A stretch of 64,000 bases of DNA, from positions 169,600 to 233,599 of the forward strand of contig JAHDYR010000007.1 of assembly GCA_019828565.1 (NCBI GenBank), read 5' to 3'. The first letter of the stretch is position 1; every line of letters starts with the position of its first letter. The notes beneath the pieces were generated by a model that was given only the letters and a program-made list of their open reading frames with translations, did not search any database and was not told the origin of the DNA. Below are positions 2,875-58,430 of this stretch, in pieces. The position numbers and the translations under genes are program-made. The stretch comes from Carpediemonas membranifera BICM. Its lineage: Eukaryota; Protista; Fornicata.

Positions 2875-3612
2875 TCAGACGGCATTGTCAGGCAAGCTTC
2901 GTCGTAGGTGGCATTGCTCGTGGACAGGATAAAAGAAATCAGCATTGATCGCTTCAGGGGAGAAGCAGGAGACAATCTTGTTCCAAGGGAGGTTTGGAAA
3001 CACCTTCGCCAGGTGTTCGCGCAAGGCAGCGCGAAGATTGGTCGAGAAAAACTTCTCGTCACTGCGAGGAAGGCAGTACTTGGAGAATTTCTTCGTATCC
3101 TTCAGCTTCAGGAACCGACGCTGTTCTTCAGGATCCAGGCGAGCATGTGGCACATCTGGCGTTGCGTCAAGAGCAACCGCTAAGGTGTCAAGCAGTGTCT
3201 TCATATCTTCTGTCGCAGCAGTCTCAGGGTCAACGCTGCGGAAGGCATGCAGCGCTGATTGGTAAGCAGCTTCTGCCCGCGCTGCCACCTCGTCCTTCCT
3301 CGATGGGTTCATGTGGACAGACTCGGACTCAGTGTTGAATGCAAGTCGGAAACCAGCTCGTGTTGAATTCTTGACCATCTGCTTGAAGTTGTGCGCCTCC
3401 GTCTTCTTGATGCACGACAGAATAGTTTCTTGGATATCAGCATCAGCCTTTTGCAGGACTGCCGTGCAATTCTCCAACGCGGCCTGAGACAACGGCTTGT
3501 AGGTGCGGTACGACGAAGTATTCGCTCTCCGCGCAGCTATCGCTGCTAACTGCTTGCGAGGCGCCTTTCCACCTTGCGTAGGCCGGCGAGCCGTTTGCTT
3601 TGTTCTAGCCAT
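2875..3612 (-). CDS. Protein with N-terminal histone H3 tail mimic fused to a non-histone helical body (C-terminus may continue to 2754 by frameshift)
   Basis: Begins [30 protein letters not shown]. No histone-fold motif such as LLIRKLPFQRL downstream. Confidence 0.75.
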   Translation of the reverse strand: [245 protein letters not shown]

Positions 3613-3735: not shown

Positions 3736-5355
3736 GCAATGGGGTGGAGAAATCGATATCTGGATGGATCAAAGCTGTTTGAATGTGTCTGTGGGGACAT
3801 CAGTAGCGAAACACGCAACGTCGGTTTTCCCTCGCCATCCCGACGTCACAAGTGCACCCGTACTGCACTGGCGCTGAAGAATACACGTGTCCTCATCGTG
3901 TTCGAGCCAACCTATGGGTTCGTTGCTGGAGATAGCAGGCAGTTTTCGATTGATGAATCTGTCTCCATTGGAGGGCACGCAGAACGCATTCGTCAGATCT
4001 TTGCGGCAATGCATAGCGAGTATACGGTTATCGAGACGGCCCAGTTCGAGAACGAGGACGATTTTTGAGGCGAAAATCAAGGAATTCGGCAAGCTGTATG
4101 GTGACTATGAGACTTTTTTTCATTATCACTGGTCACTCGGACTCTGATGGTCGGTTTGTGGTCGATGCCCGCACGATACCAGCCATCTGGACAACTGCCT
4201 TCGACTTCATCGAGGCAATTCTGAAGAATTATGAGAGTCATGTCTGCAAGTTCGCCCGAATCATGGGTGTGTATATTGCCGCCTGCCAGTCTTCCGCCCG
4301 TGACCCACGGCCGATCTTTCAGTTGTATTCTGGCAAGTTCAAGTTCACAATGCAACGGTGTGTGGTGCTTTTGACACCAGATGAGCTACCCGCCGTCGAA
4401 CTTGCCGCCCATGACGCCACGTGGCTCATCAGAATCATGACTCAGCCAGATCACCTCCATGAGATCGCGCAATTCTGGTTCTGGATGTCCAAGCTCTCGT
4501 ACATGAAGCGAAGAGTCATTATCGCAAGACCTGACGGTTGTGCAAAAGCGAAGATCGTATCGGAGGAAGACGCAAGACTCCCGCCGCGTTGTTATCCTTT
4601 GCTTAACAAGGTTTACCGGCCTGCGTACCCGAACTTCGATTCCACTGCTAAGATCGTCGACTTTCGCTCTCTGCTCTTGATCAAGTCTGAACACGAGTCA
4701 TCTGTGGCCATTGAGTCTCACATCAACAATATGATTGAGAAGAAAGAGATTCCAATCGGCACCAGCGGTCAGCCACAGTCCTTCGTTGAGGAAATTGTGA
4801 ATGGGTTGAAGTCATGGAGGAAATACTCGACACACCGTGATGGCAGCTGTGTTGCGCACTGCTGTTGCATGATTAGGGACGGCCATTTCCGGGATATGAC
4901 CACCCTGACCCACAGAACAGATCTTGAGGCAGCCATGGCTTTGCGTGCCGAGCTGGTGGAAAGCCGGGTGAAGCGGACGGCTCTGACGGAGGATTCCGCT
5001 AAGGCAGAACTTTTTTCCAAGATGGGCTGGCTTACCGATGATGCTGTGCGAGAGTTTTCCATGATCTACATGCGTAATGTCATCATGGTGTGCAACAACG
5101 GTAATAATTCTACAGTGATATTGTTCACACATGGTCACCAGTTTTTGGGGTTTGTACCCTTCTGGCGACTCAGCTGCTGATCGTTGTGAGAATTTCCAGG
5201 TGTTCTGTTCCAGACATGGCATTACCCACTTTATTCTGCTCCAGGACGACCATGCGGAACTTGTCAGTCTCCCAGAGGGTATCAAAAGAAAAGCGCAAAT
5301 ACAGGAAGGCGCTCCGTCATCCACAAGTAGACAAAAAGATGATGAGAGTGATTAA
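3736..5355 (+). CDS. Caspase/metacaspase-like (clan CD) peptidase, frameshifted at poly-T runs
   Basis: Removing one T in each run at ~4063-4067 and ~4113-4120 joins VLIVFEPTY..AERIRQIF..EAKIKEF..TFFIITGHS..GVYIAACQS, giving a His/Cys dyad context like FxYSGHG and DACHS. Start and end are approximate. Confidence 0.5.
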
Positions 5356-43800: not shown

Positions 43801-46130
43801 GGCGGCGATCCTGTCCGGGTCGATGCGGATGCCGTCAGCGGAGAGGATGAAGCCCACGACCTTGACGGATCGGCTGCCGATCGTGCACTTCTCGGCGCTG
43901 AGGCGTAGGTTCGCGTCCTTGAGGAGTTGTAGTGTCTTTTGGAGACAAGCGAGGAATTCAGCCTTTGTGCGGCCATATAGCAGTATGTCGTCGATGTAAA
44001 CCGCCGCGCCTCGGTGGAGTACGGGTGCGAGGACTTTCTGCATAGCTCGCTGGAAGGCCGCGGGGGCTGTTTTGATTCCGAAGGGTACGCGGCAGAATTC
44101 CACGTAGTCGTCCGGGGTGACAGTTGCTGTGAGTGCGATATCATCAGGGTGGACTCGCATCTGGTGATAACCTGAGCGCAGGTCTAACGAGGCGAAATAC
44201 TGAGCGCCGGCCGCCTCCCTGGCAAACAGTCGTAAGTCGGGGAGGGGGAAATGATCATCCTGGATGTACGCATTGATTCGGGTGTAGTCAACGCACACGC
44301 GGATCTTCCCAGACTTGTGGCCGTGCTTAACGATCACGATGGGGGCAGAGAAAGGGCCTTCGGAGTCTCGAACGATACCTTGCGAGCGCCAGCGCTGGAT
44401 TTCAGCATGTACTTGCGCTCTGAGAGCTGGATCAGCGATAGGGCGTGGCTTCGCCTGTATGAGGACGTCATCCGTGAGCCTGATGTGGAGAGGATCGAGC
44501 TTGGAACCTTCTGAGGGCAGCTCAGGCTCGAATACTTGTGAATGCTCTCGGAGAAGGGGCAGAATGTCCTCCTTGAGCTCCGGGACTGTTACTGCTTCAT
44601 ATCCTCGGGGTGCAACGTTGTCGACGGCTATATCGTCATCGTCGTCGGCTGAAACAGCGGTATCGGATGGGAACGACAGGCTCAGGGAATCTTCGGTGAG
44701 GATCCCAAGTCTGCGGAGTACGTCCGTTCCTAATAGGAACTTTGGCACATCTCCTGGAATAATGAGGGCCAGTAGCGAGATCTCAGTGTCGTAGCCCGCG
44801 GGCCTGGGCAGGGCAACGGTAACTCGGAGGTATCTGTCGCTAGTGAATGAGTCGCCGGTTGCGACAGCTGCGGAGGTCTTTCTGCCTGTGACGACTTCGC
44901 AGCTCGTGCGTTGGTATAAATGCTCTGCTAAACCACTCGAAACGCATGTGACTCCCGCCCCCGTATCAATAACAATCGGATACTCCAGGCCATTTATATG
45001 GCCGTTCAGGGTGAGCGGGCCCTGCTGGGGGGTGTGCGCGTCGACTGTGTCTACACGCTCCTTACGGGGAGAATTGGGGCGCAGACGGCCGTTGTCACGC
45101 GTGAACTTGGGTTTGAAGGCAGGCTTCTCGGCAGTCGGACACTCGGAATTCCAGTGGTTGCCACCGCACTTCTCACAGGGAGCAGGAGGGGCGCGGTTGC
45201 CCGGATTGACGTCGTTTGCTCGGGCTGGGGGTGCGGTGTTCTTCTTGACAGCAGGCTTCTTAGGCTTGGAAGGGGCCTCATCGTCGTTGTCCGCGTCCTT
45301 CTTCTGCTTGATGGGAACGAGCTCGTAGCCCTTGATCAGGGCAGTCTGGGCAAGCTCGTCTTCTTCATCGGCGGCCTCGAGGGCGAGAGTGATGGTGTCT
45401 TCGAGCGAGAGGGTGGTGGCGACCGCTAATTCGGTCTTCAGGCGTACGGCGCGTTGTAGGGGGTACGGGCGCAGGTTGTTGATGAAGATCTTGGCGGCCT
45501 TCTTCTCAGGCTTGTCGACCTTCTCGTCGTCATCGTCATCGGTGTCGTCCTCCTCCGGTTGTTCCTCATCGGGGAAATCTACCTCAGTGCGGGAGGCGTA
45601 GACGGCGCGGAATTGCGTGGCAAATAAACGGACGGTGCCTCGACGAGTGACTTTGGGCGGAGCGAGCGTGGGCATGGTGCAGCGAGTGTGCTGGAGTTCT
45701 CTGACCCACTCGTCGGCGTTGCGGGGAGCAACAAGAGCGTCGAGGGCTTCGGAGACCTGGTCATCAGAGAGGTCTTGGATTTTTGCGTCAGTCTGTCTCT
45801 CAACGGCGTCAATATACGTCTCATCAAGGAAGACTCGGTAGTTCGCATTGGGGAAGAAGACTTTCAGTCTGTCAACTTCTTGGCGATAGGCTTTCACCCC
45901 GGAGCGGGTGAGCTCGCGGAGCTTAGGGAAATTGCTGGTGCTGATATTGCTGAACATGGTGGTTGTTGTGGACTAGTTTTAAAACTGTGCCGTGCCTTTG
46001 GGGCGTGCTAGCAAAACCTGGTGAGGAAGTATTTAATAGATTGCGATACGGTGCCGCGGGCCAGCCGGGACCGTATCGTATCGGCTAAAAATAAATACTG
46101 ATCGAGCCTAGAGTGGCATCAGCCATGACA
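40883..46130 (-). mobile_element. Complete, apparently intact chromo-Gypsy LTR retrotransposon with 145-bp LTRs
   Basis: Identical LTRs at 40883-41027 and 45986-46130; TSD CCCT at 40879-40882 and 46131-46134; PPT GGGAGGGGTAG at 41028-41038. Confidence 0.96.
41917..45957 (-). CDS. Gag-Pol polyprotein (CCHC, PR, RT, RH, IN, chromodomain)
   Basis: Uninterrupted 1346-aa ORF: CEKCGGNHWNSEC, IDTGA, YIDD, TDAS, DTLGP, RGPF, EYIVESIVD..VHWLGY. Confidence 0.95.
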   Translation of the reverse strand: MFSNISTSNFPKLRELTRSGVKAYRQEVDRLKVFFPNANYRVFLDETYIDAVERQTDAKIQDLSDDQVSEALDALVAPRNADEWVRELQHTRCTMPTLAPPKVTRRGTVRLFATQFRAVYASRTEVDFPDEEQPEEDDTDDDDDEKVDKPEKKAAKIFINNLRPYPLQRAVRLKTELAVATTLSLEDTITLALEAADEEDELAQTALIKGYELVPIKQKKDADNDDEAPSKPKKPAVKKNTAPPARANDVNPGNRAPPAPCEKCGGNHWNSECPTAEKPAFKPKFTRDNGRLRPNSPRKERVDTVDAHTPQQGPLTLNGHINGLEYPIVIDTGAGVTCVSSGLAEHLYQRTSCEVVTGRKTSAAVATGDSFTSDRYLRVTVALPRPAGYDTEISLLALIIPGDVPKFLLGTDVLRRLGILTEDSLSLSFPSDTAVSADDDDDIAVDNVAPRGYEAVTVPELKEDILPLLREHSQVFEPELPSEGSKLDPLHIRLTDDVLIQAKPRPIADPALRAQVHAEIQRWRSQGIVRDSEGPFSAPIVIVKHGHKSGKIRVCVDYTRINAYIQDDHFPLPDLRLFAREAAGAQYFASLDLRSGYHQMRVHPDDIALTATVTPDDYVEFCRVPFGIKTAPAAFQRAMQKVLAPVLHRGAAVYIDDILLYGRTKAEFLACLQKTLQLLKDANLRLSAEKCTIGSRSVKVVGFILSADGIRIDPDRIAALKELTVPQTVTELRRIVGKFNYLRSFIPFSATLMEPLTRLMTGAKNARLTWTDEQDAALQALKAAITKHIELTHPDPSLPWEVYTDASDYGIGGVIFQLKGETRQILTFVSKKLTGPQTRWTTYEKELYAILYTLTRPDFSAILRLKQDWKVFTDHRNLTYLFRKSASNAKIARWKMILSDYNPTIVHIEGASNVVADTLSRALPQTDAEVSALDDSHQHILQGAHNDAVGHHGIRRTVQAIRAGGHNWSGMQSDAKKFIQACPTCQLRHTADTDVPYHSTQPTNPFEVVFIDTLGPLPESADGLKYIIAAVDGFSKHVSLFPAHTTNAASAAKSIYQFCGRFGVPSAIQTDHGPQYDNKLVAELTKRLTLNHRFSVPYRPQANGIVERMNAEIVKHLTPLLNHGDWVDLLPQVELIINNTASSTTGRTPLNILFPHLEHTHYEARREDLTGILRAVRDNIAQYTTAAKRKAPTGHWAPQAGSLVLLKRIKFSKLQRPYRGPFKVRGPGTVSNTTTIEALSDPEAAMTVATHRLKPFIRGTLSDAELLQLQAEGEDEYIVESIVDVIKTSRGYNLRVHWLGYETAEDSDIPLNNANSRLEALDSYLKSYPSEAPKINRYIKKKGWQA

Positions 46131-46161
46131 CCCTTGCCCGCTTCTTGGACAGTGGTCCGCA

Positions 46162-46175
46162 GGGCGTGTAGCTCA
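46162..46175 (+). repeat. Target-site duplication equal to tRNA-Ala nt 1-14 (also at 50172-50185 and 54193-54206)
   Basis: GGGCGTGTAGCTCA occurs at all three junctions, each preceded by A. Confidence 0.95.
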
Positions 46176-49100
46176 TGAAGTTTGCCAAAAGCGCAATCCA
46201 GGACGCTTTAGCTTCAGGAGGCGTTGTAAGCACCCTTCAAGAGCCGTCAGACGCGATTTTCGCGTTCCTCCGTGCGACTTTGCTTCGATATGTGCCGCCG
46301 TCGCTAATGCGGGAACATGCGTCGACAAGACAGCGTTTCAAACGAGCATTGTGCTCGAAGAACGTTATCTCGATGCTATTTACTGCTGATGCCAGCGCTA
46401 AGAGCAAGCGTTTCAACGTCGCCGTCGCGAACGAAATCGTGTACTTCCTGTCGCCGCTATTCAACGCTCATCCTGTCCTGTTCGACAAAAAGGACTCCAT
46501 TGACCGGATATCCGCTGGTCTGGAGCGCATCTGCCTTCACGTTGAACAGATGAAGCTTTCTCCGACATCTCTTCGTCTCCTTATTCTCAAGCTCGACACG
46601 CGAGTGCTGCTGGACTCCTCTGGCACACAGAGCGTTCTTCATGAGAGTAAAAGAGACGATTTGATCGACGAGTTGCTTTCCATGGGGTGCCCAATCAACA
46701 CAATGGGCCTCCTGCCGTCGGATAGTCCGACTGATGTCAGCGGAACTCAGGCCGAACCGGTTAGTGTGCCTCAGGAGGCATCGTTGGCTGTGACGGACTC
46801 CCCATTCCCGCCGAGGAGGCCGAGTTCGAGTCTGCCTCGCCCAACCCGCCCCCGACGAGGTCATCCGCAGTGATTGTACTCCCCGGAGTCACCACGTGCA
46901 GGTAGCCAGACATCTGAGGCGGGTGGTGCCGTCGCCCTGGTCGACAGAGTTGTAGGTGTTGAGTCACCTTACGGCACCGGGGGCGAGGCCTCTAGTCAGG
47001 ATACCTCGGCACCCACGCAACCGAGCTCGAGCTCGGACAGCAGCCCTGCTGCTGTCATCAGGGCCACCTTTGACGAGTGGGTCCCCGACGCCATGCGCGC
47101 CGACCACTGGACCACTCCAGAGCAGGTGACGGCCACCCTGTGCGACCCAGCCCTCGTCCGGGCCCTTATGGACGAGTCCAACCGTGGGTCGGCCACGGGT
47201 CGATTCAGCCAGAGTCGGCTCCGGCAGCTCTGTGAGGCATTGAGGGGCTTTGTCCCCGAGACCGTCAGGTCGACACTGCCAGTCCTGCCCAACGGCGGTA
47301 GGATCTTCACCAAGCTGCCCCCGGTGGTTGCCAAGATCGCCCAGGCCTGCTTCGGGTCAGTCCCGCAGCCGGCGCCCCGGGTGACCTGGGTACCTGATGG
47401 GGCCGCACGCCAGCGCAGTGTCCCCGAGCCGTTCTTGCCAGCTCACAGCGCCATGTTTGTGGGGAAGTTGCTCCCCACGAAGAGGGCCAGACTGGCATGG
47501 GCGAAGAGCTTTGTCGCGCTGCTCAATGAGTACGCCGCAGCCCCGGCCCACGGGAAGCCCGACGTTGTCCGCCGCATCTTGACCTTCGCGCAGGGTCTCT
47601 ATGCTCCTCCGGAGCGGACCACCGAGCAGCCCCGGCTGAAAGCCAGTGCGCGCGCACTCAGGTTGGGACAACGAGGCTTCTATTCTCGCGCCACGCAAGC
47701 TCTCTCCGCCGGAGAGTTCGCTGGGGATCGCGCGTGGGTGGAGGCCAGGCTCTGTGAGAGCCAGGTGCAGCCGTCTGGTAGTCGGCTGGCAGCAGTGTCG
47801 GGTCCCGCGTCCACACTGAACCACTGCCAAATGACTGTCCCTGCGGTGAAGAAGGCACTTAAGAGCCTCAACGCCGAGTCCGCACCGGGTCCTTCAGGCC
47901 TATCTTACCTTCATCTGAAGGCGATGGGCCGGGCCATCGGGTGGAATGAACTCGCCGCGGCTCTTGTGCCCCTGCTCGAGGATATGCTCGAGGGCGTCGC
48001 CTGCCTGGAGCCATTTTCCCACTGCATACTTGTGCTGATCCCGAAGAAGGATGGCAAGCCGCGCCCCGTCTCAATAGGCGACAGCCTTCGTCGTCTCGCA
48101 GCGAAGGTGGCAGTTCGTCAGGCTGCTGCCCGGCTGCGGGACGACAAGGCGTTGCCGGGTCAGTATGGCCTCGGCGAGAAGTGCGGGCTCGAGGAGCTAA
48201 CCAATCTTGTGAGGGAGCATCATCGTGGCGGTGGTCAGGTGATCGCTTTGGATCTTACCAACGCATATGGATGCATGAGTAGATCTCACCTTCGCGATGC
48301 GACAGCTGCATACAGCCCGTCGCTTTCCGAGTACCTCGAACTGATGTTGCTTAATCCAATGCTGTTCTCAGCAACCGGGATGGTCCTCAGATCACTCGAA
48401 GGAATTCCGCAAGGAGATCCTACGAGCCCGCTGCTGTTCAGTTGCGGCATGAAGCCCCTTTTGGACGATCTTCGGACCGAGTTTCCAAACTACGCATTTT
48501 ATGCCTATCAGGATGATGTCTACTGCCTGATGCCCAAGGACGCTACAGAGAGTGAGACGAACACGGTCATCATGACCGCGACGTCCAATTTCGCCAGAGT
48601 CGGGTTGAAGGTCAACGAGAAGAAGACTGTCATCGCCGGGCTGGGTCTAGTGGCCAGTGAATCCTCGCTTGCGCCGCGCGGCGAGGCTTTCAAGGTCCTG
48701 GGCACGCCGGTGGGGCCGGCTGCGTACGTCAAGGAGCAGGTCTGCAGGCAGTTCGAAGGCGTCAGCGAGCAGGCTGGACGCGTGAGCGACATGGTGGCAG
48801 ACGTAGGGCCCACGTCTATCATCGTCGCTAACAACATGACGCGTGCGTGCCTGCTGCCCAAACTGTCGCACCTCTACCGCAATGTGTGCCCGACGTCCGA
48901 CCTCGTCGGCGTTGGGCGTCGCTTTGAGGAGGAGACGCTCGTTCCATTGCTCTCCAACCTCGTTGGTGCCGATGCAGTGATTGGTACGCTCGAAAGAGCG
49001 GGCCTTAGCATCACGCAGGGAGGTCTTGGATGGGGATAACCGTCCATCGTGTGGCCGGCGGCATATCTCGGTGCCGTGAAGCAGCTCTTTGACCAAAACA

Positions 49101-50171
49101 TCTCACTGAACGTGCCCAATGAGGCATTTCAGGCGGTTGGTGCTGCTGGTGGTCCGCAGGACGTGGATGCCCTGAAGAAGTGGAAGACTTCGACTCCGCA
49201 GTTTGAACTGACGACGAAAGTGCGGGAGTTCAAGCAGAAGGAGCTTACGGCGAAGAGATCGTTTATTTCTGAGCCTTATGTGCGTGCAGTGTCCACATTG
49301 ACGCCGTTCGATCCCGTTCTTTCGGGTTCCGATTTGGCAACTGCAATTCTCCGCCTACACCTGTCTCTTGACCCCTACGTGATAGACAAAGCCAAACCAT
49401 GCCCCCTGTGCGGCAGATCTGTTGCGGATTGGTCTCATGGACTCTCTTGTGTTCGCCTCAAGGGCGGTGCCCGGATCGAGCGTCATAACGGCGTCAGAGA
49501 CGCCATCTACGACGTTTGCTCGGAGCAGTTCGTCCCCAAACGGCGCGAGGTTCCGCTGGATCACACCAGTATGGCCTACATGCCCAACGGGACGGGCCCG
49601 ACGGAGGTGAAGGCCGATCTGCTCATGCTAGCGGCAACGTCAGCTGATGGAACGCCCCTCCACGGCGATATGATCGTCGATGTGGTCGTCTCACAGTCGA
49701 TCAAGGATGGGATCCGTGACAAGGCCGCTCAGTACTCGAGGTTCGACTGCGAGCTCATCGCGGCCAGCTGTGACCTCGTTGGCAACACGAGAGCTGACCC
49801 CGAGGACCGCAAGTCGTGCTGGGTGTGGCGTCTGTGCGAGAGGCTCGGTCTGAGCGCGGAGGTCCGTCGGGACCTGCGCAGTCGGGTCGTCTTGGCTGTG
49901 TGGGCTGGGAACGCGGCGGTCATCCGTGACTACCGCGAGCAGTGCCGCGTGGCACAGCTCTAACTGTGGTGTGCCCTTCGCGTGTGAGAGAGGCGTCGTA
50001 GTCGAGCCAGTCGAGACATCCGAGATTTTTGCACATGTGCAAAATTTCGATTTCCCGAAAGCGACCCCGCCGAGGCTTACGACTCCGACTACATAACCCA
50101 CGAGCTCTACTAGGGACCCCCACCCTGCTGACCCTCTGCGCGCGGTAAGAACGTTCTTTCAGATGATTAAA
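46176..50171 (+). mobile_element. RLE-type (CRE-like) non-LTR retrotransposon, copy 1, in the tRNA-Ala target
   Basis: RT motifs SAPGPSG, PRPVSIG, LDLTNAY, QGDPTSP, YQDD, LGTPVG; CPLC..H..C, RHN, KADL..IVDV..K..QY; in-frame stops at 46871 and 49037. Confidence 0.93.
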
Positions 50172-50185
50172 GGGCGTGTAGCTCA

Positions 50186-53100
50186 TGAAGTTTGCCAAAA
50201 GCGCAATCCAGGACGCTTTAGCTTCCGGAGGCGTTGTAAGCACCCTTCAAGAGCCGTCAGACGCGATTTTCGCGTTCCTCCGTGCGACTTTGCTTCGATA
50301 TGTGCCGCCGTCGCTAATGCGGGAACATGCGTCGACAAGACAGCGTTTCAAACGAGCATTGTGCTCGAAGAACGTTATCTCGATGCTATTTACTGCTGAT
50401 GCCAGCGCTAAGAGCAAGCGTTTCAACGTCGCCGTCGCGAACGAAATCGTGTACTTCCTGTCGCCGCTATTCAACGCTCATCCTGTCCTGTTCGACAAAA
50501 AGGACTCCATTGACCGGATATCCGCTGGTCTGGAGCGCATCTGCCTTCACGTTGAACAGATGAAGCTTTCTCCGACATCTCTTCGTCTCCTTATTCTCAA
50601 GCTCGACACGCGAGTGCTGCTGGACTCCTCTGGCACACAGAGCGTTCTTCATGAGAGTAAAAGAGACGATTTGATCGACGAGTTGCTTTCCATGGGGTGC
50701 CCAATCAACACAATGGGCCTCCTGCCGTCGGATAGTCCGACTGATGCCAGCGGAACTCAGGCCGAACCGGTTAGTGTGCCCCAGGAGGCATCGTTGGCCG
50801 TGCCGGACTCCCCGCCGTCCGTTCCCGCCGAGTTGGCCGGGCCGGAGAATGCCTCGCCCAGCCCGTCTCAGACGAGGCCAGCCGCAGTGATTGTGCGCTC
50901 TCCGGAGCCACCACGTGCAGGTAGCCAGACATCTGAGGCGGGTGGTGCCGTTGCCCTGGTCGACAGAGTTGTAGGTGTTGAGTCACCTTACGGCACCGGG
51001 GGCGAGGCCTCTAGTCAGGATACCTCGGCACCCACGCAACCGAGCTCGAGCTCGGACAGCAGCCCTGCTGCTGTCATCAGGGCCACCTTTGACGAGTGGG
51101 TCCCCGACGCCATGCGCGCCGACCACTGGACCACTCCAGAGCAGGTGACGGCCACCCTGTGCGACCCAGCCCTCGTCCGGGCCCTTATGGACGAGTCCAA
51201 CCGTGGGTCGGCCACGGGTCGATTCAGCCAGAGTCGGCTCCGGCAGCTCTGTGAGGCATTGAGGGGCTTTGTCCCCGAGACCGTCAGGTCGACACTGCCA
51301 GTCCTGCCCAACGGCGGTAGGATCTTCACCAAGCTGCCCCCGGTGGTTGCCAAGATCGCCCAGGCCTGCTTCGGGTCAGTCCCGCAGCCGGCGCCCCGGG
51401 TGACCTGGGTACCTGATGGGGCCGCACGCCAGCGCAGTGTCCCCGAGCCGTTCTTGCCAGCTCACAGCGCCATGTTTGTGGGGAAGTTGCTCCCCACGAA
51501 GAGGGCCAGACTGGCATGGGCGAAGAGCTTTGTCGCGCTGCTCAATGAGTACGCCGCAGCCCCGGCCCACGGGAAGCCCGACGTTGTCCGCCGCATCTTG
51601 ACCTTCGCGCAGGGTCTCTATGCTCCTCCGGAGCGGACCACCGAGCAGCCCCGGCTGAAAGCCAGTGCGCGCGCACTCAGGTTGGGACAACGAGGCTTCT
51701 ATTCTCGCGCCACGCAAGCTCTCTCCGCCGGAGAGTTCGCTGGGGATCGCGCGTGGGTGGAGGCCAGGCTCTGTGAGAGCCAGGTGCAGCCGTCTGGTAG
51801 TCGGCTGGCAGCAGTGTCGGGTCCCGCGTCCACACTGAACCACTGCCAAATGACTGTCCCTGCGGTGAAGAAGGCACTTAAGAGCCTCAACGCCGAGTCC
51901 GCACCGGGTCCTTCAGGCCTATCTTACCTTCATCTGAAGGCGATGGGCCGGGCCATCGGGTGGAATGAACTCGCCGCGGCTCTTGTGCCCCTGCTCGAGG
52001 ATATGCTCGAGGGCGTCGCCTGCCTGGAGCCATTTTCCCACTGCATCCTTGTGCCGATCCCGAAGAAGGATGGCAAGCCGCGCCCCGTCTCAATAGGCGA
52101 CAGCCTTCGTCGTCTCGCAGCGAAGGTGGCAGTTCGTCAGGCTGCTGCCCGGCTGCGGGACGACAAGGCGTTGCCGGGTCAGTATGGCCTCGGCGAGAAG
52201 TGCGGGCTCGAGGAGCTAACCAATCTTGTGAGGGAGCATCATCGTGGCGGCGGTCAGGTGATCGCTTTGGATCTTACCAACGCATATGGATGCATGAGTA
52301 GATCTCACCTTCGCGATGCGACAGCTGCATACTGCCCGTCGCTTTCCGAGTACCTCGAACTGATGTTGCTTAATCCAATGCTGTTCTCAGCAACCGGGAT
52401 GGTCCTCAGATCACTCGAAGGAATTCCGCAAGGGGATCCTACGAGCCCGCTGCTGTTCAGTTGCGGCATGAAGCCCCTTTTGGACGATCTTCGGACCGAG
52501 TTTCCAAACTACGCATTTTATGCCTATCAGGATGATGTCTACTGCCTGATGCCCAAGGACGCTACAGAGAGTGAGACGAACACGGTCATCATGACCGCGA
52601 CGTCCAATTTCGCCAGAGTCGGGTTGAAGGTCAACGAGAAGAAGACTGTCATCGCCGGGCTGGGTCTAGTGGCCAGTGAATCCTCGCTTGCGCCGCGCGG
52701 CGAGGCTTTCAAGGTCCTGGGCACGCCGGTGGGGCCGGCTGCGTACGTCAAGGAGCAGGTCTGCAGGCAGTTCGAAGGCGTCAGCGAGCAGGCTGGACGC
52801 GTGAGCGACATGGTGGCAGACGTAGGGCCCACGTCTATCATCGTCGCTAACAACATGACGCGTGCGTGCCTGCTGCCCAAACTGTCGCACCTCTACCGCA
52901 ATGTGTGCCCGACGTCCGACCTCGTCGGCGTTGGGCGTCGCTTTCTGAGGAGGAGACGCTCGTTCCATTGCTCTCCAACCTCGTTGGTGCCGATGCAGTG
53001 ATTGGTACGCTCGAAAGAGCGGGCCTTAGCATCACGCAGGGAGGTCTTGGATGGGGAATTCCGTCCATCGTGTGGCCGGCGGCATATCTCGGTGCCGTGA

Positions 53101-54192
53101 AGCAGCTCTTTGACCAAAACATCTCACTGAACGTGCCCAATGAGGCATTTCAGGCGGTTGGTGCTGCTGGTGGTCCGCAGGACGTGGATGCCCTGAAGAA
53201 GTGGAAGACTTCGACTCCGCAGTTTGAACTGACGACGAAAGTGCGGGAGTTCAAGCAGAAGGAGCTTACGGCGAAGAGATCGTTTATTTCTGAGCCTTAT
53301 GTGCGTGCAGTGTCCACATTGACGCCGTTCGATCCCGTTCTTTCGGGTTCCGATTTGGCAACTGCAATTCTCCGCCTACACCTGTCTCTTGACCCCTACG
53401 TGATAGACAAAGCCAAACCATGCCCCCTGTGCGGCAGATCTGTTGCGGATTGGTCTCATGGACTCTCTTGTGTTCGCCTCAAGGGCGGTGCCCGGATCGA
53501 GCGTCATAACGGCGTCAGAGACGCCATCTACGACGTTTGCTCGGAGCAGTTCGTCCCCAAACGGCGCGAGGTTCCGCTGGATCACACCAGTATGGCCTAC
53601 ATGCCCAACGGGACGGGCCCGACGGAGGTGAAGGCCGATCTGCTCATGCTAGCGGCAACGTCAGCTGATGGAACGCCCCTCCACGGCGATATGATCGTCG
53701 ATGTGGTCGTCTCACAGTCGATCAAGGATGGGATCCGTGACAAGGCCGCTCAGTACTCGAGGTTCGACTGCGAGCTCATCGCGGCCAGCTGTGACCTCGT
53801 TGGCAACACGAGAGCTGACCCCGAGGACCGCAAGTCGTGCTGGGTGTGGCGTCTGTGCGAGAGGCTCGGTCTGAGCGCGGAGGTCCGTCGGGACCTGCGC
53901 AGTCGGGTCGTCTTGGCTGTGTGGGCTGGGAACGCGGCGGTCATCCGTGACTACCGCGAGCAGTGCCGCGTGGCACAGCTCTAACTGTGGTGTGCCCTTC
54001 GCGTGTGAGAGAGGCGTCGTAGTCGAGCCAGTCGAGACATCCGAGATTTTTGCACATGTGCAAAATTTCGATTTCCCGAAAGCGACCCCGCCGAGGCTTA
54101 CGACTCCGACTACATAACCCACGAGCTCTACTAGGGACCCCCACCCTGCTGACCCTCTGCGCGCGGTAAGAACGTTCTTTCTGATGATTAAA
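50186..54192 (+). mobile_element. RLE-type non-LTR retrotransposon, copy 2
   Basis: Near-identical to copy 1. ORF 50185..53984 has one 2-nt insertion at ~52945; corrected length 1265 aa. Confidence 0.93.
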
Positions 54193-54265
54193 GGGCGTGT
54201 AGCTCAGTTGGTAGAGCGCGTGCTTAGCATGCACGAGGCCCTGGGTTCAAATCCCAGCTCGTCCA
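54193..54265 (+). tRNA. tRNA-Ala(AGC)
   Basis: 73-nt cloverleaf with a G3:U70 pair, anticodon arm CGTGC-TTAGCAT-GCACG (AGC at 54226-54228), T arm CTGGG-TTCAAAT-CCCAG, discriminator A, and TTTT at 54268-54271. Confidence 0.96.
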
Positions 54266-54283
54266 CATTTTGCCAGCGCCTAA

Positions 54284-57200
54284 CGCTAGACTAGGCTAGC
54301 CACCTAACTCATACTTCCACAAAGTGTGGCTCTATAACAGAGAGCCCTCCTCTTAAATCCAACCAAAATGGGACAATCCCGCAAGACGTCCCTGTGGGAC
54401 TAAAGCTTTGGGCCGGCGAGTCTATCTCGCCTCGACCGTTCCCCTCGAACGCGGATGTTTAATGGAGGGGGTGGTTAAAAGTGGGGCCCGAGAAGGCTGA
54501 GGTTCATCCTCCTGGTGAGGTCCTCGTTTGTTCTGATGGCGTCAGCGACATAGCTGCGGAGGGAGGTGACGTCCTTCCATGTGCCCATTGAGAGGATCAC
54601 CTCCAGCGGGACTCCTGATAGAGCCATCTCCGACGCTGCCCCCTTACGGAAGCTGTGGAGACCCGTCCGTGGACCGAACAACGCCTTCACGACTCGTCGG
54701 AGGTGTGCGGCTGTGAGCGGTTTGTCTCTGCTCAGGCGCCCGTTGATTATGACTCGCCAGATGGGGGTGTCATCAGCCAGGTAGTGTGTGCCCTCGACCC
54801 AGCGTCTAAGTGCCAAGGCCGGGTTGAAGGCGGCTGATAGCCATACGTATGGTACGCGCTTCTTAACTCCCGTTAGGATGGTCTTGGTCCGCTGAATGTG
54901 TAGGAGAATGTCGCCGTTCTTGAGTAGCTCCAGGTCGGCCGGGCATAGGGAGAGTATCTCGATGCCTCTGGACACCGTCAGATAGGCGACTGCCCCAAAG
55001 AGACATGCCTGATATGACTCAAAGTCGTCACTCCGGCGCCCCAGTGCCTCGATCATCTCAGCCTTGGTGATGGCGCGCGAGCCGCCGGTAGTTCCCGCCG
55101 TGCTGGCGCCCTTAGCCGCCTGCTTAACGATGTACTTGGAGTTGGCGGGCGGATGCCAGTCTTTGAGGAACTCCTGTAGCTGAACAATCCAGTAGCCCTT
55201 CCTCGCCACGTTCGATGGCCCGCAGAAGGAGCCTTCGTCCTTGAGGAAGGCTACAAGCTGGTCTCGATCCGACAGGCTGCGATCGCGAGAGCCTTCGAAC
55301 CTGGCCACCCAGCCGGCCACCGTCCGAGCAGACGCGTGATTAAGGTGAATCACTCTGTCCGACCTGAGGACTCTGTGGAAAACGTCCTGAACGCCATCAC
55401 ATTGAACCGTAGGCGTCCTCTGTCCTGTAGGTGAAGTAGGTGGGCCAGATCTGAGCTCGAAGCCGGGACGGAGAGACGGAGTTTCCAGGACGTCCAACTC
55501 TTGAGGAGTCTCATCTCCGGCGCTTGAACCTCTGGGTAGAGGAGAAAGACTGCTGAGGTCCAAGACCTCGGGTGTCCAGTCTGAGTCTGAACTCTCGCTG
55601 TCGCTATCTTCTGGACTATGGCTGCCATAGACGAATTGGGGGCCCAGAGGACGCGACATCCAAGCCTTACGTCTACGTCCGCTGAGACTGTCTGGACTGG
55701 ACCCCACTCCGCGAGGACAGATTCCATGCTGGACTCCAGAGAGGAAGGGAGTCGTGAGAAGCCTCTGGACAGCCGATCTGCTGCCAGGTTGATGATGCCC
55801 GGAGTGTGTAGTCCACGGAGTGTCAGGTTCCGGTCCTCCGCCTCCTTCTGGATCTGGGCTAGAATGTGCAGGGCCTGAGGTGGAGCCTTCGTAGACCCCG
55901 CCTTGTTGAGCCAGGCCAGAGCTGATGTGTTGTCTGAGAAGATCGATAGCTCGCGTTGGGAACTCTGTCTGCCGATCAGACGGATGCCCTGTAGGATTCC
56001 CGCGAGCTCCTTCACGTTGATAGATTCTGCTCTTAGTTCTGGAGTGAACGTGCCCGAGGCTGAGGTCCCATACTCGCCGTGCACGGCTGCTCCCCACTTG
56101 ACTCCAGATGCGTCTGTCGATACGACGAGGTCTAAGGAGGGGTGAGCGCCCCAAAGCGACTGAAGTTCTCTGATGTCTCGGACTGGGCGCTCTCTTAGCA
56201 GTAGCAGCCACTCTTGCAGTAGCTCCTTGGAGAGTGGGTCCTGTTGAAGGTGTCTCAGCCGGAGGAAAGCCCCGTGGGCGGTTGTAGCGAAGTAAGTCAG
56301 TCTCCCGAGGATCTTGGCCCAAGTCTCCTGATCGATGGTCTTGCCTGCCAGAGCCTGATGAATGTGAGAGGAGTAACGTTTGGCCTTGTCCGCCGGGAGG
56401 CGTATTGTAAAACTCGCGGAGTCTATCACGAGCCCCAGATAGACCAATGACTGAGTCGGTGCCCATTCTGACTTCTCCTCTGAGGTGAGGACACAGAGGT
56501 CGGCTAGAGTCCGCCTGATGCGCGGCACCGCCCTCCTCAGGATTTCTCGGTCGCGGTGAAATAAGAGGAAGTCGTCGAGGTAGACAACGATGGTAAGACC
56601 CGTCCGAAGGGCTAGTATCTTGGCGAGTTGGTTGGTGATCGTCTGAAACACGAACGGCGATGCGCGCCAGCCGAAGCCTAGCACTCTGTACTGAAACGCT
56701 CGTCCGTCTGGAAGATAGACTCCTAGCAGCTTGCGGTCCTCCTTCCGTACTGGTACTTGATGGTACCCGGACTTGAGGTCGAACTTGACCATCCAGTCGC
56801 CCCTCTGGAGAAGGGAGAGAGCTCTGCGCAGACCGTAGAGCCGGAAGGATGAGCGCTCTGCCGAGCAGTCGTTCAGTATCGTGAGGTTGTGAATGATCCT
56901 CTTCGACTCGCCCTTCGGCACAGTAAACAGCGAGGCGGTGTGTCGCAGGGAAGAGGGATTCACTTGCTCTATGACGCCTGTCTCTATCAAGGAAGGAATC
57001 TGCTGGACAATGAATGGGTCGACTGTCGGCTGTTGCCTTGGTGCTGGTGGTTGACTTCTCAGACGGATCTCGACCCCGTATCGTAACCAGTTGATCACCC
57101 GTTGTGATGCTCCCAACCTCTGCCACTCCCTCCACGCCGCGTTCATGCATGGAAAGAGGGTTAGGTGTGGGCTCTCTTGCCGGAGGATCCTGTCTGAGTG

Positions 57201-57865
57201 CGACCTCGGTCCTGAGCGCGGCCACCGCGGCGAAAATTAGCGTCGCGCTTATCGCCCTTAGACTTGGCGCGGGCCGCCAGTTCCAGGACCTCGTCGCGAT
57301 CAGGCACGCCCTTCGCCTTGCAATAGTTCTCGAACCGCTCTGCAGTAGCGTCAGTGTACACGTCCTTGATTAGAAGGTACTGGATTCTTGCAAAGAGAAT
57401 GTTCCCGATCTCCTTCATCTTTGCGCCGTTCTCGATCCTATTCATGGTCTTGTATACGAATCTGGCCTCATCTTCGAGGCCGAACCTCTTTGGCATCTCC
57501 AGGAACAGTGGACGGCGAGCTGCTTCTGCTTGCTGCTCCAAAATTGCTTCCGATTGTATCTTAACCAAGCGCTCCAGCTTCTCGATACGCTTGTTAAGCT
57601 CATCGGGACTGTCTTGCGGCGGCAGGTCTTCGTTATCAGACATCCTGCCGATGCGTTTCGAAGTGTGACCTAAAGTGCACATTGATCGGCGCGCGCAGGT
57701 GCCAGTGATGGTCCTGTGACAGGAGTAAAGGATTTATTCTTCTCGGGCTCCTTTAGGCCCGATGTGCCTTCGGGCATTCGAAATTCTGATGCCATAAACT
57801 GCACGTTTCCGTGCGCCCTCTCGGGCGTCTCAGCACCCCGGGTGCCAATGGGCTCGAGTGGTGCT
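54284..57865 (-). mobile_element. DIRS-like element E with open ORFs: gag 57161..57643, RT-RH 55350..57146, overlapping YR ORF ending at 54475
   Basis: DLKSGYHQ, YLDD, STDAS, INVKEL, ADRLSR; YR motifs VSRGIE, LHSFRKG, GTW..LRSY. Confidence 0.9.
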
Positions 57866-57897
57866 CGCTAGACTAGGCTAGCCACCTAACTCATACT
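57866..57897. repeat. 32-bp direct repeat (other copy 54284-54315)
   Basis: CGCTAGACTAGGCTAGCCACCTAACTCATACT is identical at both sites. Confidence 0.92.
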
Positions 57898-58430
57898 CCC
57901 AAAGGGGAACACCGTCCGCAGCTCTGAGGTAAGTAGAGTAATTACAGTGGAGTATGGCGGCTCCATGCCTGCCTCAAGTGCCAGCAGCTCCTTGCTGCTT
58001 TCGGCTGGACCGGGCGTCTCCTTGACGGCCTCCGGTGCGATGGTTTATGGTGTTAGAATGGGAACAGGGTGTTTGCAGTTTGTCGGGTTTGACGAGGGTG
58101 GTTGCGGATAGCCTCCCCGATGTAAGGCCGGAGAGAGTTGCCGTTAGCCCAGGTTCCGAGTTGGAGTAAGGTCTCTATCGGTGTGCCTGCTAGTGCCAGT
58201 TCAGAAGCCGCTCCCTTGCGGAAGCTGTGTAGGCCAATCCTGTTGTCGTGGAAGACTGTGCGTAGCTCCTCTCGCATACGTCGCATTGTGCACGGGGTCT
58301 TACGGCTGACCTTCGATGAGGATGTGATCGCGCGCCAGATGCAGGCGTCCGGTGGAAGGTTCAAGCCTCGTACCCATCTCTTCAGGGCCAGCGCTGGGTT
58401 GAATGGGCCTAGTAGGGTGTTGGGGTACAC
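57898..58430 (-). mobile_element. 3' part of DIRS-like element F (YR C-terminus), cut off at the LINE start
   Basis: FNPALALKRWV, GLHSFRKGAASE, GTW..LRPY; paralog of the element E YR. Confidence 0.85.

Follow-up and report, generated by a model that had tools for sequence, protein, structure and literature searches.

A restriction-like-endonuclease-type retrotransposon stacked in tandem at the 5' edge of a tRNA-Ala(AGC) gene in Carpediemonas membranifera

The tandem in the window and its protein

We describe here a stretch of 64,000 nt (the window; coordinates without a contig label are positions in it) from JAHDYR010000007.1 of Carpediemonas membranifera BICM, in which two copies of a retrotransposon lacking long terminal repeats (a non-LTR element), here called the Ala element, directly precede a tRNA-Ala(AGC) gene. 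The genome is a long-read assembly, published as 24.2 Mb in 69 contigs with an N50 of 905.8 kb and a GC content of 57.1% (PMC8516963). Our genome-wide searches covered its 24,237,836 bases in 69 contigs, which are referred to by C-numbers. The genome paper (PMC8516963) is silent on retrotransposons and tRNA, and a literature search combining Carpediemonas with non-LTR elements gave nothing relevant.

Framing the two copies, the 14-mer GGGCGTGTAGCTCA was found three times in the window (46162-46175, 50172-50185, and 54193-54206), with none expected by chance (100 shuffles). The two units between the 14-mers, 3996 and 4007 nt in length, are ~99% identical and differ at 44 alignment columns. Both terminate in GATGATTAAA, which is joined straight to GGGCG without poly-A. 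They have neither long terminal repeats (LTRs) nor terminal inverted repeats, and they abut head-to-tail with 14 nt between them. The sole tRNA gene detected in the window by ARAGORN is an intact tRNA-Ala(AGC) at 54193-54266, whose nt 1-14 are the third 14-mer. The features of the locus, all on the plus strand, are as follows.

46162-46175, plus strand: first 14-mer (tRNA-Ala nt 1-14), the putative target-site duplication 5' of copy 1
46176-50171, plus strand: element copy 1 (3996 nt), the one further from the tRNA; a single frame interrupted by two in-frame stops
46737-46933, plus strand: divergent patch found in copy 1 alone (from sequence comparison of the copies)
50172-50185, plus strand: second 14-mer, the only bases separating the copies; its last A is the A of the copy 2 ATG
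50186-54192, plus strand: element copy 2, 4007 nt, adjoining the tRNA; one frame break
50185-53001, plus strand: copy 2 open frame of 938 aa, with an N-terminal region that is predicted to be all-helical and shows no zinc fingers, followed by a linker of low complexity and the reverse transcriptase (RT)
52057-52722, plus strand: RT core, Pfam RVT_1, residues 625-846 of the 938-aa frame (E 4.8e-17)
52866-53984, plus strand: the other open frame of copy 2 (372 aa), encoding the CCHC motif and the nuclease of the C-terminal part
53421-53471, plus strand: CCHC motif (CPLC...HGLSC), invariant across seven aligned relatives
53502-53756, plus strand: core of the predicted restriction-like endonuclease, with RHN, the invariant E, KAD, the invariant D of VDVVV, and the K of RDKAAQY
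53985-54192, plus strand: 3' untranslated region of 208 nt, terminating in GATGATTAAA, no poly-A
54193-54266, plus strand: intact tRNA-Ala(AGC) (ARAGORN); nt 1-14 are the third 14-mer; same sequence as the five other AGC genes of the genome
54267-54271, plus strand: ATTTT after the tRNA, of the RNA polymerase III terminator type

An initial annotation of this DNA had described the layout as 14-mer, copy 1, 14-mer, copy 2, and intact tRNA-Ala(AGC), which agrees with the 14-mers starting at 46162, 50172, and 54193 and with the ARAGORN result. It had also equated the duplication with tRNA nt 1-14, let the 3' end of the element join tRNA +1 without a long poly-A, and held that the tRNA gene is left intact with its terminator. 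The three 14-mer positions, the passage from GATGATTAAA to GGGCG in both copies, and the whole tRNA followed by ATTTT bear this out. As to the length of the duplication, the base 5' of the 14-mer is A in all contexts, which allows a duplication of either 14 or 15 bp, or of 13 bp should the element itself contribute the A of the ATG. The ATG of the long open reading frame (ORF) takes its A from A14 of the 14-mer, to which the element adds TG, with an in-frame TAG two codons before it; the mRNA leader must therefore come from the 14-mer or from further upstream. Very short mRNA leaders occur in Giardia, a relative of Carpediemonas, and would be compatible with a leader derived from the target. 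In an Rfam scan of 45900-54192, no family and no ribozyme were hit, and the fold of the 3' untranslated region was no better than those of shuffles (z -0.5).

The proteins were analyzed on the frames as assembled, and the length of ~1265 codons given below is the span of the frames together. When all frame pieces were searched against Pfam, RVT_1 alone was hit, with no apurinic endonuclease (APE). An RT family profile compared with solved structures matched R2 proteins (E 3e-25 to 6e-16), LINE-1 ORF2p (1e-12), and the group II intron RT (4e-9). In the region of the CCHC motif and the nuclease, the residues C, C, H, C, E, and D are invariant across 7 relatives. The predicted fold of the C-terminal piece matched R2Tg (E 2e-4), R2Pm, and R2Bm first, and then PA-N, AvaII, and T7 endonuclease I; also, the nuclease profile aligns with residues 989-1154 of R2Tg, which are its nuclease region. 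As judged from these motifs and modelled folds, the Ala element is a non-LTR retrotransposon of the restriction-like-endonuclease (RLE) type, with the RT followed by the CCHC motif and then by a PD-(D/E)xK nuclease, and the RLE assignment made in the initial annotation is thus upheld by the motifs, by a fold search topped by R2 proteins, and by the profile match to R2Tg.

In the 620 residues N-terminal of the RT, we found no Cys/His finger pattern, no Pfam match, and no usable Atlas match, and the fold predicted from the single sequence of this region was of low confidence (pLDDT, the predicted local distance difference test, of 43). Word-based protein searches gave 7 and 4 proteins, with no named clade reference among them. 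The only hint at the CRE clade comes from NCBI, where a paralogous family in this genome carries the automatically assigned name "SLACS". Outside the genome, two relatives named P0008 (1100 aa) and P0010 (1141 aa) have ~40% identity and the same RT-CCHC-RLE layout, and are also without zinc fingers; no tRNA lies beside their genes within the 340 nt present on the short contigs. Their sources are a Logan SRR31444219 contig and GCA_002919055.1, PPCM01001310.1. On PPCM01001310.1, a second RT gene lies just upstream, with a chromovirus adjoining.

Copies, targets, and sister families in the genome

In the genome DNA search, near-identical copies (99-100%) were hit on C4, C6, C8, C26, C48, C63, and C68, together with old fragments of the Ala element on C36, C63, and C67. 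The genome has six tRNA-Ala(AGC) genes, identical to one another over 74 nt, and all six carry the 3' end of the element at nt 1. Exact 14-mers number 15, namely the six tRNA starts and nine 5' flanks of elements. The initial annotation had proposed to check its reading by tabulating the flanks of all genomic copies, which would refute it if unrelated, and by surveying the tRNA-Ala loci for occupancy. The other copies did not show unrelated junctions; the 14-mer was found directly before 9/9 of the 5' ends, and 11/12 of the 3' ends were found at tRNA nt 1, six joining a tRNA and five the 14-mer of the next copy, with one followed by other sequence. The survey gave 6/6 AGC genes occupied, while both tRNA-Ala(CGC) genes, which have 1 mismatch to the AGC genes within the first 15 nt, and tRNA-Ala(TGC) are without the element. 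The lone 3' end away from tRNA belongs to an old copy (C63:20872-28804), which stops at nt 4005 and is followed by unrelated sequence; this copy is broken by nested LTR-type insertions, with a 5-bp duplication, GAGGT, at element nt 3574-3578.

Tandem stacks whose units are exactly 14 nt apart were found on C8 (2 copies), C4 (a partial and 2 copies), C6 (a partial and 1 copy), and C68 (1 copy and a partial). The C68 partial ends at element nt 2698, the C4 partial starts at nt 2697, and both abut the inverted ends of a foreign element (CATACTGTCCAGGG...). Because the two partials meet the same foreign element, they would be the halves of one interrupted copy, which makes six loci for six tRNA genes. 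The halves are situated at C68:695198, 32 kb from the end of C68, and at C4:5417, 5.4 kb from the start of C4, a separation that points to an insertion of very large size or else to a rearrangement or an assembly break that parted the two contigs. Two short Ala copies on C6 and C26 lack the 14-mer, and both are bounded by other transposons. We considered these as truncated products of target-primed reverse transcription (TPRT) without a 14-mer but rejected the idea, given the bounding transposons and the absence of any orphan 5' end in the genome; being so bounded, the short copies are uninformative on the origin of the 14-mer.

With regard to the state of the copies, all nine assembled near-full copies have at least one frame break each, at different places, and their frames together span ~1265 codons. 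The private 1-nt indels are mostly in runs of A, T, G, or C, and many frame breaks may be assembly errors, that is, residual errors of the long reads. Since indels in homopolymers are possibly read errors, repeats of this assembly should not be called dead from frameshifts alone. Copy 1 has in-frame stops at 46871-46873 and 49037-49039, while the frame break of copy 2 is a 2-nt insertion (52944-52945) found in no other copy. Copy 1 is the most diverged of the family and holds nearly all private changes of the pair, which, together with its two stops against the one insertion of copy 2, fits the proposal of the initial annotation that copy 2 is the younger. The private changes of copy 1 are mostly confined to the patch at 46737-46933 (~30 substitutions, a 7-nt gap, and a 2-nt gap), and this patch agrees with a tract at C67:243.4 kb at 21/24 differing sites. 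From this sequence agreement, the patch is read as a tract of recombination or conversion and not of hypermutation. The C67 tract covers only the low-complexity linker of the protein (residues 198-312) and is embedded in unrelated sequence. In the C4 and C6 stacks, it is the distal copies that are broken by other transposons, in keeping with their being the older ones. Copies of one array share private variants; the C8 pair have T, A, and T at columns 739, 740, and 2487, and the C4 pair share variants at alignment columns 3231 and 3578.

The flanks of the target are also informative. Three unrelated sequences were found 5' of the 14-mer, namely a unique flank (in the window), the end of an element with at least 40 copies, and the 3' end of the Ala element itself (in the stacks). 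These unrelated contexts indicate that the upstream flank is irrelevant and that recognition lies within the tRNA gene or in factors bound to it. Downstream, the flanks of the tRNA differ among the loci from the first base after the T run, with ~18 nt common to C26 and C6 only. We considered whether the tRNA is carried by the element as a 3' transduction, which was rejected in view of these differing flanks and of stack spacers that are 14 nt rather than a tRNA. Another candidate, in which the sequence 5' of the 14-mer on C63, C68, and C48 is a relic of an older insertion, was also rejected, this sequence being the end of the separate element with at least 40 copies.

Other transposons are frequent neighbors of these tRNA genes. 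The repeat with at least 40 copies (e.g., C68:688082-688468) is often reduced to its last 230 nt and may be a short LTR; its end falls 0-1 nt ahead of tRNA genes of many kinds (e.g., C6:356940, C3:124132, C11:373965, and C5:363886). At three tRNA-Ala loci, this repeat had been inserted earlier than the RLE element. In the window, a Gypsy element terminates ~31 bp 5' of the first 14-mer, and a tyrosine-recombinase element lies just downstream of the tRNA (54284-57905; ORF 54475-57225, minus strand, with a weak Phage_integrase match). Also, repeat ends of the type GCTAGCTGTCCTAGCC or GCTAGACTAGGCTAGCC are found 15-35 nt behind the tRNA at several loci. With Gypsy, tyrosine-recombinase, and RLE elements around it, several transposon classes thus converge on the same tRNA gene, which bears on how compact protist genomes tolerate transposons.

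At 26-35% identity, the nuclease domain of the Ala element has at least 146 matches in the genome, most of which lie in arrays that repeat head-to-tail every 4.0-4.6 kb; the arrays of these sister families can hold as many as a dozen units. For the other RLE families, targets were read from coordinates by setting the nuclease matches against Rfam tRNA positions. Examples are given below.

C39:754250-797852, C7:400015-408586, C24:282720-291341, C65:588421-634443, and C6:1742091-1778982: example arrays of the RLE domain (domain search)
C6:1779199, C11:65388, and C26:1140701: sense family, with a tRNA ~215 nt after the nuclease match
C5:395071, C24:44532, and C26:1243865: antisense family beside a 74-nt tRNA

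One of the sister families, family T, has 39-41% RT identity to the Ala element and is situated antisense at the 3' edge of tRNA-Thr(AGT). In long mixed arrays, family T is interleaved with another family, here called the second family (58% identity in the nuclease and 70% in the RT). The last 12 nt of tRNA-Thr are duplicated at the 5' side of each unit, and the T run behind the tRNA is provided by the 3' end of the element. Each of the tRNA-Thr(AGT) genes seen has an element (5/5; e.g., C39:28055-35181 and C19:41704-44758). On C19, the unit nearest to the tRNA is a T copy of 134 nt that is truncated at its 5' end; beyond it follows an older copy of the second family, and the 12-mer is still present on the 5' side of the truncated copy. 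As this truncated copy keeps the 12-mer, the tRNA-edge duplication is made at each insertion and is a real target-site duplication, which supports the staggered cut with target duplication that had initially been proposed. The same copy indicates that, in this sister system, insertions are independent and new copies are added next to the tRNA. From the homology and the identical geometry, we infer the same per-insertion duplication and tRNA-side stacking for the Ala element.

Proposed mechanism and its alternatives

The anatomy of the tandem, the census, the domains, and the family context were read directly from the assembly, and from them we infer the positions of the nicks and the order of events. 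We consider it probable that the Ala element is a young, sequence-specific RLE retrotransposon of ~1265 codons that inserts by TPRT at the 5' edge of tRNA-Ala(AGC), regenerates the gene, and stacks on the tRNA side. TPRT is suggested by the domain content, the exact 3' junction, and the 5'-truncated copy in the sister family. The nuclease of the Ala element would nick the bottom strand between positions -1 and +1 of the tRNA gene, and the freed 3' end would prime copying of an element RNA without a poly-A tail. The top strand would then be cut 14 (possibly 15) bp further in, after A14, and repair would duplicate tRNA nt 1-14 as a consequence of the staggered cuts. The product would be a 14-nt stub upstream, the element, and a complete tRNA gene with its internal promoter boxes and terminator, which is again a target. 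Later insertions would accordingly fall between the older copy and the tRNA, so that stacks would grow on the tRNA side with the distal copies being the oldest. An RNA leader copied from the duplication of the donor could help to join the 5' end. With the first nick at the edge of the gene and the second 12-14 bp inside, the gene would be rebuilt and the target spared. Since all six tRNA-Ala(AGC) genes are occupied and the genome has no other, insertion must presumably be compatible with expression of the tRNA, and the last bases of the element would have to serve as the upstream flank of this essential isoacceptor.

Alternatively, the 14-mer might be a part of the element, i.e., a tRNA-derived leader on its RNA, and the insertion might be blunt at -1/+1 with no staggered cut. 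The mRNA does need leader bases, with its ATG built from A14 plus TG, and the 9/9 14-mers at element 5' flanks sit before full-length 5' ends, the two short Ala copies having none. These short copies are, however, transposon-bounded and say nothing on this point, and the truncated sister copy still has the duplicated 12-mer without the 5' end of the element. An element-borne leader and a staggered cut can furthermore coexist, and we regard a blunt insertion as improbable. The private variants that are shared within the C8 pair and within the C4 pair and absent elsewhere would be consistent with one insertion per locus, from which the stacks arose later by unequal exchange or replication slippage between repeats. 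Such variants are nonetheless also expected if RNA of a local copy reinserts next door, and exchange can yield neither the sister array of two interleaved families nor the truncated copy nearest to the tRNA. Also, the private patch and the stops of copy 1 indicate separate histories of the two copies in the window, and stacks formed by exchange alone appear very unlikely. Finally, a long-read assembler could have written one copy twice, and the private homopolymer indels do suggest residual errors in this assembly. Against this stand the 44 columns at which the copies differ, among them a tract of 170 nt with another origin, the recurrence of the 14-nt head-to-tail junction on four contigs, and the sister-family arrays of as many as a dozen units. 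We therefore give hardly any credence to the tandem as an artefact of assembly.

Several points nonetheless weigh against TPRT with regeneration of the gene as proposed above. Confidence in the model of the nuclease is modest (pLDDT 61), and with every assembled copy frame-broken, activity of the element today is only putative. The genome offers no empty tRNA-Ala(AGC) site for comparison. The Ala family itself has no clean TPRT-truncated copy, and the proof of a target-site duplication hence comes from a sister family with an RT identity of only 39-41%. Furthermore, the variants shared within arrays imply that unequal exchange or conversion may also shape the arrays.

We would go one step further only tentatively. 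The sister families might represent a radiation of zinc-finger-free RLE families, each nicking the outer edge of one tRNA species (5' in sense or 3' in antisense), regenerating the gene, and filling all of its copies, with the element ends serving the tRNA genes in a mutual dependence; we hold this to be possible but rather doubtful. If true, essential tRNA genes would depend on the ends of the elements as their control region upstream (Ala) or as their T-run terminator (Thr), and nature would offer in these families a collection of integrases that spare the gene and can be re-targeted to conserved tRNA sites.

The families, with their different tRNA targets, provide a comparison set for how an RLE protein without zinc fingers reads its site. 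Site-specific RLE elements such as R2 are under development for targeted gene insertion, and those known so far split the gene that they target. Among eukaryotes, the start of tRNA-Ala(AGC) shows high conservation, and the target of the Ala element would therefore exist in many organisms.

Comparison with known systems

The frames of the Ala element together would encode a single protein like that of R2 (R2Bm and R2Tg), with RT, CCHC, and PD-(D/E)xK nuclease. Both elements have an exact 3' junction without poly-A and keep to one fixed target, in each case an RNA gene with many copies; R2 also gave the best match among solved structures for both the RT and the nuclease. R2 splits and inactivates the 28S gene with almost no duplication. 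The similarity is nonetheless remote, with 14-17% identity in the fold alignment, and the Ala element differs from R2 in its target, tRNA instead of 28S, and in that none of the N-terminal zinc-finger and Myb domains of R2 were detected.

RLE elements at tRNA genes are themselves not new. The initial annotation had held that none were known, which is incorrect; three RLE families specific for tRNA genes, namely NeSL-1_TV (tRNA-Pro), LIN15_SM (tRNA-Arg), and LIN25_SM (tRNA-Glu), all related to NeSL, have been published by Kojima and Jurka in 2015 (PMC4640811). One of the three comes from Trichomonas, another metamonad. In the supplement of that paper (PMC4640811), no more of the tRNA than its 3' part comes after the 3' end of LIN15_SM, indicating that LIN15_SM cuts the gene, whereas the junction of the Ala element is at nt 1 and leaves the tRNA whole; among the three families, only the junctions of LIN15_SM were compared. 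Members of the NeSL/Utopia lineage have one to three N-terminal zinc fingers, and some have a Ulp1 protease (PMC4640811); zinc fingers are thus typical there, but none were found in the Ala element. Within this lineage, Utopia, which targets U2 snRNA, is similar in several respects: its reptile families make 20-bp target duplications, Utopia-1_NVit is sometimes in tandem, and the Phytophthora copies whose 3' end is intact all have U2 sequence after them. Utopia, however, leaves U2 genes without their first 38 bp, with disrupted genes outnumbering intact ones, while the Ala element disrupts no target gene. The suggestion of a new site-specific system can accordingly be kept in part: targeting of tRNA genes by RLE elements is already published, and the new point, as far as can be read from the sequence, is an RLE element with a cut geometry that spares and regenerates the tRNA gene, by which it fills all copies of the gene and stacks.

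Among elements of related hosts, GilM and GilT of Giardia are also of the RLE type in a fornicate metamonad, and Arkhipova and Morrison are said to have described them in 2001 in head-to-tail arrays. They belong to the CRE clade by their RT and are located at telomeres (PMC10088271), not at tRNA genes. The CRE clade in general (CRE1/2, SLACS, CZAR, GilM/GilT, and MoTeR) targets spliced-leader genes or telomeres, in contrast to the Ala element at the 5' edge of tRNA-Ala(AGC).

Sparing of tRNA genes is known for other classes of elements; TRE5/TRE3, DGLT-A, and Dp_NLTR-A of Dictyostelium and Ty3 of yeast use the vicinity of tRNA genes as safe sites in compact genomes (PMC5006619). These elements employ an APE or an integrase and insert 2-100 bp outside any tRNA gene, probably guided by polymerase III factors, whereas the Ala element has an RLE and is found at one exact nucleotide position of one tRNA species. 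A parallel in logic is provided by bacteria, in which integrative elements and phages insert at the 3' ends of tRNA genes by a tyrosine recombinase and restore the gene with a duplicated gene end that is carried in attP. The Ala element would follow the same restoring logic, but its duplication would be made by staggered nicks in the course of retrotransposition.

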